From positions 4,092,001-4,156,000 of the forward strand of contig CDRNST010000085.1 of assembly GCA_977016875.1 (NCBI GenBank): 64,000 bases of DNA, written 5' to 3'. Shown here piece after piece: positions 20,689 to 23,600 of this stretch. The notes below the pieces were generated by a model. The model had not been told where the DNA came from. It searched no databases and was given only the letters and a program-made list of their open reading frames with translations. The position numbers and the translations under genes are program-made. The DNA is from Pavona decussata. Its lineage: Eukaryota. How positions within the stretch are numbered: position 1 is the first letter of the stretch; every line of letters starts with the position of its first letter.

Positions 20689-23600
20689 ATGGCTTATTGT
20701 CACTGGCTAGTGATATTCCTGGCTGGATTTGCCTTGTTTACGCTGAGAGTTTGTTCTCAAGGTAAGCTAATTGAATAGATAAGCTACATGTGCTGTTTTT
20801 TGAGTATATTATGACCAAGCGGCCATTATGATCAAATTGTGCATCATAAAAATATTGACATCTGTACTCAGCTTATCATCCACAATATTCAATGATTTAC
20901 TGAGTCGCACTTTAAAACCTAGAGAAACAGCTCATTAAATAATGAAACATGGAAATATTTTAGATATTACGTCTTTATGAAATAAAAATTCGCGGTCGCC
21001 ATATTTGTTTTCAAACTTCTTTTAAAACTGGGGCAATAATGTAACTGACTCAAATTTCTGCAAGGCTGATCGGACTGCGATAGAAACTCTTAACACGACA
21101 GCGACATGAAGGAGACGAAACCGAGAATCAACAGAATGCGGCAACCGTGGACAGCTGTTTCGAGCTGGTTGGCTCTCGTCAGCACGGTGTAGCACAGCAA
21201 AAAGTAGAACACCAACGCGAATTGAATGTTCTAGCTACCAAATGCTCGTGGTGGCCGATTTCGAATGGGCCCAAACTCAGACATCCGTCCACGTCATAGC
21301 GCGTGACTATGAACAATGAACAAAAGAACTGAAATATCATGTCGCTGTCGCAATAGGTTAAATGAGAAAAGCAAAACTTTTCCTTCACAGGTACATGGCC
21401 AAACCATGTTTTACAGATCCTGCGTATACCTGCAGCATTTTCGTTGTTCAGGTCCTTGCTTATTGTTTGCTTTTATGTTTTGGACCGTAGATCTTTTTAG
21501 AACCGATATGCTGTACTTTTTAACATGGTTTGGCCATGTACCTGTGAAGGAAATGTTTGCTTTCCTCATTTAACTTATTGCGACAGCAACATGATATTTC
21601 AGTTCTTTTGTTCATTGTTCGTAGTCACGCGCTATGACGTGTACGGATGTCTGGACTTGGGCCCATCCGAAATCGAAATCACTTCCACGTGCATTTAGTA
21701 GACTACTCGACTTGCGTTGGGGTTCTACTTTTTTTTGTGCTACACCGTGCCGACGAGAGCTAACCAGCTCGAGACAGCTGTCCACGGTTGCCACATTCTG
21801 TTGATTCTCGGTTTGGTCTCCATCATGTCGCTTTCGTGTTAAGTTTTCTAGGCAGTCTGATCAGCCTTGCAGAAATTTGAGTCATTTATATTTTTGGCTG
21901 ATTAGATCTTTTATAGATCCTGCGTATACCTGCAGCATTTTCGTCAGTGAGGTTCCTTGCTTATTGTTTGCTTTTGTGTTTTGGACCGTAGGTCTTTTTA
22001 GAACCGATATGCTGTACTTTTTAACATGGTTTGGCCATGTACCTGTGAAGGAAAAGGTTTGCTTTTCTAATTAAACTTATTGCGAGAGCGACATGATACT
22101 TCAGTTCTTTTGTTCATTGTTCGTAGTCACGCACTATGACGTGGACGGATGCCTGAATTTGGGCCCATCCGAAATCGGGTACCACGCGCATTTGGTAGAA
22201 ATTTGAGTCATTTATATTTTAGCTGATTAGATCTTTTACAGATCCTGCGTATACCTGCAGCATTTTCGTTGTGCGGTTCCTTGCTTATTGTTTGCTTTTA
22301 TGTTTTGGACCGTAGATCTTTTTAGATCCGATATGCTGCACTTTTTAACATGGTTTGGCCATGTACCTGTGAAGGAAAAGGTTTGCTTTTCTAATTAAAC
22401 TTATTGCGAGAGCGACATGATATTTCAGTTCTTTTGTTCAGTGTTCGTAGTCACGCGCTATGACGTGTACGGATGTCTGGACTTGGGCCCATCCGAAATC
22501 AAAATCACTTCCACGTGCATTTAGTAGACTACTCGACTTGCTTGCGTTGGGGTTCTACTTGTTTCCGTGCTACACAGTACTGACGAGAGCTAACCAGCTC
22601 GAAACAGCTGTCCACGGTTGCCGCATTCTGTTGATTCTCAGTTTGGTCTCCATCATGTCGCTGTCGTGTTAAGTTTTCTAGGCAGTCTGATCAGCCTTGC
22701 AGAAATTTGAGTCATTTATATTTTTGGCTGTTTAGATATTTTATAGATCCTGCGTATACCTGCAGCATTTTCGTTAGTGCGGTTCCTTGCTTATTGTTTG
22801 CTTTTGTGTTTTGGACCGTAGGTCTTTTTAGAACCAATATGCTGTACTTTTTAACATGGTTTGGCCATGTACCTATGAAGGAAAGTTTTGCTGTTCTCAT
22901 TTAACCTATTGCGACAGCGACATGATATTTCAGTTCTTTTGTTCATTGTTCGTAGTCACGCGCTATGACGTGGACGGATGTCTGAATTTGGGCCCATCCA
23001 AAATCGGCTAACAAGTGCATTTGGTAGAGCACTCGGCTCGCGCTGGTGTTCTACTTTTTGCTGTGCTACACCGTGCTGACGAGAGCCAACCAGCTCGAAA
23101 CAGCTGTCCACGGTTGCCGCATTCTGTTGATTCTCGGTTTGGTCTTCATCATGTCGCTGTCGTGTTAAGTTTTCCACGCAGTCCGATCAGCCTCGCAGAA
23201 ATTTGAGACAATTATATTTTTGGCTGATTAGATCTTTTATAGATCCTGCGTATACCTGCAGCATTTTCTTTGTGCGGTTCCTTGCTTATTGTTTGCTTGA
23301 ATAATGTAACCTCGGTTCCAGTCCTCGCTTTTTACTTCTATATCCCCGACCCACCTCTCCCTAGAGTTTATTTTGCAAAAAAGACACATTCGTGACAGAC
23401 CAAAAATACGTACTAACTTCGGTAAACACACTTTTCAATTCGCAGCATCACAAATATGGGAAACAATAGACTGTAACCGTCAAGCAATCAAACTCCGCTT
23501 CTTCGTTTAAAACCAAATACAGGAAAAATTTGCTTATAAACCAAAAGTAACGTAGAGTTCTTCACCGTCATCCGTTCGCTAAACACGCTCTTTTTTTTTT

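Follow-up and report, generated by a model that had tools for sequence, protein, structure and literature searches.

The subject of this study is a non-coding insertion of 2254 bp in the genome of the coral Pavona decussata, which occupies positions 21046-23299 of a 64,000-nucleotide stretch of DNA (GenBank assembly GCA_977016875.1, contig CDRNST010000085.1, positions 4,092,001 to 4,156,000 of the forward strand), referred to here as the window. We propose, with a probability that we put at roughly 0.85, that it is an old insertion of a non-coding retrozyme without long terminal repeats (LTRs), a non-autonomous derivative of Penelope-like elements (PLEs) that was inserted by a PLE enzyme. Comparison of the window copy with its dispersed relatives and with an intact PLE of the same genome shows an 11-bp stagger in the target, 3' start sites fixed at two places, 5' truncations that arose independently, joints with microhomology, a tail that is shared with the PLE and a hammerhead ribozyme under constraint. 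A reading made earlier from the letters of the window alone (the original prediction) had described a retrozyme-like array of ~500-nt repeats at this position, mobilised by a Penelope reverse transcriptase (RT). The Penelope-type mobilisation is backed by the architecture of the insertions, by the length of their target duplications and by a 3' tail that is homologous to that of an element with intact RT and GIY-YIG endonuclease domains.

The window copy lies between perfect 11-bp target-site duplications (AATAATGTAAC), and the bases adjoining the two copies of AATAATGTAAC differ from each other. Comparison of the insertion with itself gave direct-repeat spacings of 500, 325, 505 and 496 bp and an inverted arm that is 89-94% complementary to the forward units. 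The duplication, the unit spacings and the inverted 5' piece that had been predicted are thus confirmed. As a whole the copy comprises the 5' arm in inverted orientation, followed by some 3.4 forward units of ~496 nt; the unit coordinates of all copies refer to the 496-nt reference unit 22613-23108, and in these coordinates the forward part runs 124-496, 1-416, 89-496, 1-496 and 1-191 (Table 1). The inverted arm and the first forward unit meet at 2-4 nt of microhomology, and the last ~90 nt of the terminal partial unit (about 23209-23299) are the tail homologous to that of the Penelope element. The spacing of 325 bp, which had been taken for a deleted unit, corresponds to the junction of 1-416 with 89-496, and a later tandem duplication of unit 89-416 fits it equally well. 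Tandem Repeats Finder reports a 324-bp period with 94% matches in this region, and the two halves of that period have variants in common that are absent from the other units of the window. The element contains no open reading frame (ORF) of more than 85 amino acids (aa), its GC content is 0.41-0.44, and the RNA of the 496-nt unit folds with -154.7 kcal/mol (z = -4.1 against dinucleotide shuffles). Because its repeated parts are only 87.5-94.5% identical to one another, we consider the window copy to be old. Contigs from two coral RNA (metatranscriptome) libraries represent the empty site: they join position 21034 straight to position 23300, sharing the 11 bases of the duplication, with a flank that is ~92-93% identical to the window. 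The insertion and its duplication are therefore both confirmed, and an uninterrupted target is present in a related taxon or a divergent allele. A single extra G stands between the long 3' end and the target duplication in three insertions (window 23299, and loci L002:2399 and L004:2413), and may be an untemplated base added at priming.

Table 1. Coordinates of the insertion, its hammerhead motifs and the Penelope remnant in the window
Feature	Position	Strand	Basis or remark
Left target-site duplication AATAATGTAAC	21035-21045	.	Empty-site contig has exactly these 11 bases in common
Inverted 5'-truncated arm	21046-21410	-	Unit 241-496 and unit 1 to ~103; 'short' 3' site adjoins the duplication
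Hammerhead A, intact, type I	21144-21188	-	RF00163, 42 bits, full model
First forward unit, 5'-truncated	21411-21782	+	Unit 124-496; mapping on the reference unit
Hammerhead B, dead	21744-21788	+	Core CCGACGA and GAGA, against CUGACGA and GAAA
Unit 1-416, then unit 89-496	21783-22612	+	Internal deletion or 328-bp internal tandem duplication
Hammerhead C, core intact, helix I weakened	22574-22618	+	RF00163, 29 bits, below gathering score; predicted cut after 22612
Complete 496-nt unit between predicted cut sites	22613-23108	+	Reference unit
Hammerhead D, intact, type I	23070-23114	+	RF00163, 42 bits, full model; predicted cut after C23108
Terminal partial unit	23109-23299	+	Unit 1-191; ends at 'long' 3' site
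Right target-site duplication AATAATGTAAC	23300-23310	.	Sequence reading
Decayed, 5'-truncated Penelope-like RT remnant	39371-40694	-	tblastn against the 903-aa ORF of locus L061

Four hammerhead motifs had been predicted in the insertion. The helix III ACAGCUGU was found in all four, and the intact core (CUGANGA ... GAAA ... GUH, with three helices and helix I open) in copies A, C and D; the core of copy B is mutated, and A and D alone are fully intact. The search with the Rfam model Hammerhead_1 (RF00163, gathering score 34 bits) agreed with this division, as two motifs scored 42 bits and a third 29 bits, a loss explained by two helix I mismatches in copy C, while the fourth, copy B, had no match even at E<=10. 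From what is generally known of the hammerhead core, the substitutions in copy B should make it inactive. Of the four motifs in the window copy two, on opposite strands, are thus intact, one is weakened and one is dead, and the copy is in a decayed state. The motif has a helix I of 6 bp, a 4-bp helix II that follows CUGACGA directly and has a loop of 6 nt, and a helix III in which an A-U and a C-G pair (AC/GU) close a palindromic AGCU; it matches RF00163 end to end, and by these features it is a hammerhead of the canonical metazoan type I architecture, as defined by Cervera and de la Pena (2014, PMC4209133). When two motifs were folded together, helix III became an 8-bp intermolecular helix and helix I formed in trans, the double hammerhead reaching -35.1 kcal/mol compared with 2 x -15.5 kcal/mol for two monomers. 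The model predicts that this hammerhead would form a stable helix III only as a dimer.

The core pattern with helix III ACAGCUGU has 568 matches in the 602-Mb genome and none in a reversed control, and the motif is therefore present far beyond chance. The genome holds four versions of helix II (GAGC/GCUC, GUUC/GAAC, GGCC/GGCC and GCCC/GGGC), all of them Watson-Crick paired and all with an invariant G10.1-C11.1 pair. Of the 32 family hammerheads that were sampled, from 24 loci, 23 have an intact structure, and 17 do not differ from the reference at all. The per-site divergence from the majority base is ~0.02-0.03 in the hammerhead and ~0.04 in the body of the unit. Because the hammerhead has roughly half the divergence of the unit body, and because its helix II co-varies between families, we regard it as being under constraint. 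Outside the element, two copies of another repeat in the window (9528-9585 and 52401-52458, plus strand) carry CUGAYGAG, then a 6-bp hairpin and, some way downstream, GAAA; this resemblance to a hammerhead is probably due to chance, the spacing being unfit for one.

The window copy belongs to a dispersed family, for which a first look at the genome gave at least 1221 unit candidates. We fetched 28 loci besides that of the window; four of these are segmental-duplicate copies, which leaves 24 independent insertions. All 24 are short (455-1012 bp) and variably truncated at the 5' side, and their arrays are mostly of 1.2-1.6 units with 1-2 hammerheads. Their 3' ends fall at two places only, a short end at unit ~68-112 (mostly 96-106; sequence ...AAATTTGAGTCA) and a long end at unit ~186-198 (...TTGTTTGCTT). 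Seven independent insertions, and the window copy as well, are two-armed; in each of them the short site terminates one arm and the long site the other, and their duplications are 11-12 bp long and A/T-rich. An eighth sampled two-armed locus, L007, has neither a long end nor a clear duplication, and two single-armed insertions have duplications of 9-10 bp. The two arms of an insertion break at unrelated positions of the unit and overlap by 1-5 nt (17 nt in L007), which would fit two independent complementary DNAs (cDNAs) joined by microhomology. A snap-back origin of the inverted arm was considered and rejected, because the arms break at unrelated positions, e.g. 241 and 124 in the window. Some copies are young: the repeated parts of L002, L010 and L014 are 98-100% identical.

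These features leave little room for the idea that the element is an ordinary satellite, a local tandem duplication or a foldback DNA transposon in which hammerhead-like strings arose by chance, and we consider this the least probable of all the explanations. Tandem and inverted repetition do occur together in one place, and the internal 324-bp period resembles a later duplication at the DNA level. However, the copies are spread over many contigs, each with an 11-12-bp duplication of its own, and they vary in 5' truncation while their 3' ends are fixed; the arms do not have the fixed length of terminal inverted repeats, there is an allele with an empty site, and chance strings would not be expected to give 568 core matches against none in the control.

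Several further observations concern the sampled loci. The 5' ends of the arms cluster at unit 390-403 (five arms at four independent loci, L002, L004, L005 and L010) and at unit 29 (three independent loci, L007, L008 and L009), and the beginning of L003 lies 0-2 nt from the predicted hammerhead cut site, for which the probability by chance across the sample is a few per cent; these positions could mark RNA 5' ends or stops of the reverse transcriptase. The same element, with the same flanks and duplication, occurs in the locus pairs L010/L011 (C20:2.07 and 2.10 Mb), L016/L018, L006/L020 and L024/L029 (C232), which are segmental duplications that carried the element along and not separate insertions. 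The retrozyme copy of L008 sits in the 3' region of an older Penelope copy (L008:475-1404, L008:2512-3444), and a paralogous Penelope copy 1 kb away provides the uninterrupted 'empty site'. A sister family (L063, G000:C6:5144801-5147000) has a 505-nt period and an inverted arm; it is 75% identical to the reference over unit 78-257 and 87% over the hammerhead, whose helix II reads GUUC/GAAC instead of GAGC/GCUC, i.e. two compensatory pairs. At the hammerhead sites of two further families (L062 and L064) no PLE ORF was found within about 4 kb.

The genome also contains PLEs that could supply an enzyme. Matches to GIY-YIG within long open frames are numerous, often as inverted pairs, and one locus, L075, has an intact ORF of 1026 aa with RT and GIY-YIG domains and a DKG motif, which is the canonical endonuclease-positive Penelope architecture of Craig et al. 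(2021, PMC8557442). The family that we regard as the partner of the retrozyme has at least 910 candidates at first look, and its scored copies are 95-100% identical; it is intact, young and recently active. Downstream of its stop codon lies a true minimal hammerhead ribozyme (min-HHR; L065:559-594) with a bulged A and a 6-bp helix II, followed by GAAAUAUAGUA. Its 3' ends are again of two kinds, a short one at L065:644 (in L067 and in inverted arms) and a long one ~90 nt further on, at 731-738 (in L065, L066 and most scored copies), and it forms two-armed insertions (L073 and L074) with one arm at each end and 11-bp duplications. When the PLE tail was used as a query against 288 kb, it gave a colinear match to every retrozyme tail; over lengths of 66-98 nt the identity was 68-74%, and E went as low as 9e-9, all other matches having E>0.1. 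The match begins exactly at the boundary of the short end (between TCA and TTT) and extends to the long end. Five other sampled PLE 3' regions had no similarity to the tail of the unit, and outside the tail no DNA similarity of the unit to any of the six sampled PLE 3' regions was found. The retrozyme and its partner therefore have in common the ~90-nt tail, both 3' sites, the 11-bp stagger and the two-armed outcome, and nothing else. The tail lies between the two start sites and is shared with an intact PLE; it is therefore likely to be the cis-acting module through which the PLE enzyme is hijacked. We further suggest, with slightly less than even confidence, that the tail (unit 100-191, homologous to L065:641-736) is a portable cis-acting recognition module of one PLE lineage, with two alternative cDNA start sites, one for each strand, and that an unrelated retrozyme body with a different type of hammerhead captured it and so came to parasitise the PLE enzyme. 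Three perfect 6-nt palindromes, AGATCT, GTATAC and CTGCAG, lie in the tail (window 22712-22803 and the corresponding stretch of every unit), the first two of which also occur in the Penelope tail, and a 5-bp hairpin around AGAUC is conserved almost without covariation. A conserved structure of the tail is not claimed, as the consensus fold has only two compensatory pairs.

The likeness of the tails raises the question of whether the repeat is merely the pseudo-LTR (pLTR) of a Penelope that is autonomous and coding, or a 3' fragment of such an element, truncated at the 5' side. The hammerheads of PLEs are located in their pLTRs (PMC4209133), the tail of the unit is homologous to a PLE tail, and heavy 5' truncation is usual for PLE copies (PMC8557442). 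We nevertheless hold this explanation to be highly improbable, if not quite so far-fetched as a satellite. An ORF between units is absent from all 24 independent insertions (28 fetched loci), so that the unit is not merely the terminal repeat of a coding Penelope, the case that the original prediction had named as a refutation. L002, L003, L004, L005, L021 and the window copy each comprise over one complete period of 496 nt, and no ORF lies between their hammerheads. The unit has no protein similarity to PLE ORFs, its DNA similarity to the six PLE 3' regions is confined to the tail, and the PLE protein matches at the fetched loci are confined to unrelated flanking DNA. Among the matches and hammerhead sites listed, no GIY-YIG or RT match falls within 5 kb of a hammerhead, and the sampled PLE loci are without the unit. 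A retrozyme-like family independent of coding Penelope elements, as originally predicted, is thus upheld. The epithet 'minimal' that its hammerhead had been given is not. The min-HHRs of PLEs have an extra base after position 9 (between 9 and 10.1), a helix II of ~6 bp and no separate helix III (PMC4209133), whereas the retrozyme motif has a 4-bp helix II, no extra base and a canonical type I form, the minimal form being that of the partner PLE. The two kinds of motif are alike in that the helix III region is palindromic, from which action as a dimer follows, and in their association with PLE biology.

On the basis of this anatomy we propose that the PLE enzyme acts by double target-primed reverse transcription and recognises the element by its tail. 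The PLE reverse transcriptase/GIY-YIG endonuclease would nick an A/T-rich target with an 11-bp stagger, and each nick would prime one cDNA on the RNA of the element. The start of one cDNA would be the short 3' site (unit ~103), and that of the second the long one (unit ~191); both cDNAs would be truncated independently and joined via a few bases of microhomology, giving the inverted arm and the forward partial tandem. As to the RNA itself, the literature suggests that the palindromic loop on the 2-bp stem of helix III would allow two motifs to pair into an active double hammerhead. Cleavage of multimeric transcripts after GUC would then release monomers of 496 nt, and a host ligase could close these into circles, as for other retrozymes (PMC7229834).

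The part played by the ribozyme is the point at which a competing explanation has most force. The same element may have been inserted by the same PLE machinery from a linear template of ~1.4-1.6 units, resembling pLTR-body-pLTR, with its start upstream of the first hammerhead and its end at one of the two 3' sites, short or long; the hammerhead and any circular RNA would then have no role in mobility, and the ribozyme would be a passenger or serve some other role. We regard this as the less probable course, though one to be taken seriously. The 3' ends are never at the cleavage site and every insertion has an uncut 496/1 junction, but a re-ligated circle would also yield uncut junctions and internal start sites. 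The five arms beginning at unit 390-403 suggest a defined 5' end of the RNA and thus point to a linear template, whereas the start of L003 at the predicted cleavage site points to cleavage in vivo. Most copies carry 1-2 hammerheads and not long arrays, whereas the window copy has more than three forward units. The minimal hammerheads of PLEs cleave themselves poorly (PMC4209133), and the Naiad PLEs thrive without canonical hammerheads (PMC8557442). Set against this is the constraint on the hammerhead, with its halved divergence and co-varying helix II.

Several points weigh against our proposal that the element is a retrozyme mobilised by this particular PLE lineage. The hammerhead of the partner PLE is of a different type, so that the tail alone is common in sequence; the identity of the tails is only ~70%, and the partner family is much younger than most retrozyme copies, so that the true partner may be an older or unsampled relative. 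Tails were sampled from six PLE families only. The short arrays are unlike the long tandem arrays typical of published retrozymes, and the differences of 5-12% between the units of the window copy need either age together with later internal duplication or a heterogeneous template. Sequence of the family is present in contigs assembled from four RNA or RNA-guessed runs, with a depth of up to ~26,000 over the element and 5-66 in the flanks. This excess is about what a copy number above 1000 gives, and a depth of the same order as the copy number allows no conclusion about expression.

Another Penelope relic lies in the window itself, and the original prediction had connected it (as 39390-40700) with the mobilisation of the element. 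The remnant is real, being 40-67% identical to aa 565-902 of the 903-aa ORF of locus L061, with E down to 7e-30 in tblastn; its relevance is not upheld. The L061 ORF aligns with the RT part of the L075 protein and ends exactly where the endonuclease linker begins. Searches of this ORF against Pfam and PDB sequences found nothing, and its assignment to the PLEs rests on 35% identity over 648 aa to the ORF with RT and GIY-YIG domains, a DKG motif and its neighbours in the ESM Atlas. Among the relatives of the remnant (30 loci and the complete 3245-bp tandem unit of L061) there was neither similarity to the unit nor an Rfam hammerhead. This lineage was rejected as partner of the retrozyme, because its relatives are without unit or hammerhead and its ORF is without an endonuclease, and the remnant is a bystander from a lineage that lacks the endonuclease domain. 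The locus L061 (G000:C56:4926001-4931500) lies in a tandem array (C56:4924338-4934252) whose period is 3245 bp and which comprises at least four units. At the start of the L061 open frame there is an overlap with a hammerhead-like core (CUGAAGA ... GAAAC ... GUC) that has no Rfam match.

The architecture of PLE insertions was reportedly treated by Arkhipova in 2006. The insertions described here resemble those of the PLEs reported by Craig and colleagues (PMC8557442) in their 5' truncation, in their partial tandems, in the inverted 5'-truncated copy at the 5' side and in an extension ('tail') at just one of the insertion's ends; the tail is 30-40 bp long in those PLEs and ~90 bp here, and the element described here is without an ORF. 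Retrozymes without LTRs have been described in metazoans, including a family of 220-240-bp repeats in the coral Acropora millepora (Cervera and de la Pena 2020, PMC7229834). Our element is like these in having one canonical type I hammerhead per unit, no coding sequence, a GC content of 41-44%, target duplications of more than 4 bp, a strongly self-paired unit RNA and a coral host. Its unit of ~496-505 nt is longer than that of Acropora millepora, and its arrays mostly hold 1-2 hammerheads, compared with up to 62-mers in the metazoan retrozymes. The original prediction had called this monomer unusually long, an assessment that the published retrozyme consensus lengths of 51-972 bp do not sustain (Li, Clavereau and Pollet 2026, bioRxiv 10.64898/2026.07.22.740005). 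The retrozymes of plants (Cervera et al. 2016, PMC4918200) are likewise non-autonomous, with a hammerhead in each terminal repeat and a proposed circular RNA, but they differ in their type III hammerheads, true LTRs, primer-binding site (PBS), polypurine tract (PPT), 4-bp duplications and mobilisation by Gypsy LTR elements. No features of LTR type were found in our element, in which no search aimed at PBS and PPT was made.

A close parallel is provided by the retrozymes of Xenopus, which derive from the terminal regions of PLEs and, like our element, have sequence in common with a PLE of the same genome, in the non-coding region at its terminus (bioRxiv 10.64898/2026.07.22.740005). That work rests on similarity at the consensus level and on phylogeny; in our case what is shared can be confined to a tail of ~90 nt that lies between two alternative 3' ends, together with 11-bp duplications and two-armed insertions, and in Pavona decussata the retrozyme and the PLE differ in hammerhead type. 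Retrozymes and their dependence on PLEs have thus already been described, and as such the element is nothing unusual in a coral genome. The current study adds a specific pairing of a retrozyme with a PLE, through the ~90-nt tail, the two alternative 3' ends and the 11-bp stagger. This pairing narrows the sequence that the Penelope enzyme may recognise and offers a simple design for a first assay of retrozyme trans-mobilisation, with the tail present or deleted, and the Penelope insertion mechanism, with its two arms and its tail at one end, could be studied on a substrate of 500 nt. If true, a portable tail module would be a defined and testable RNA determinant of Penelope-like retrotransposition.

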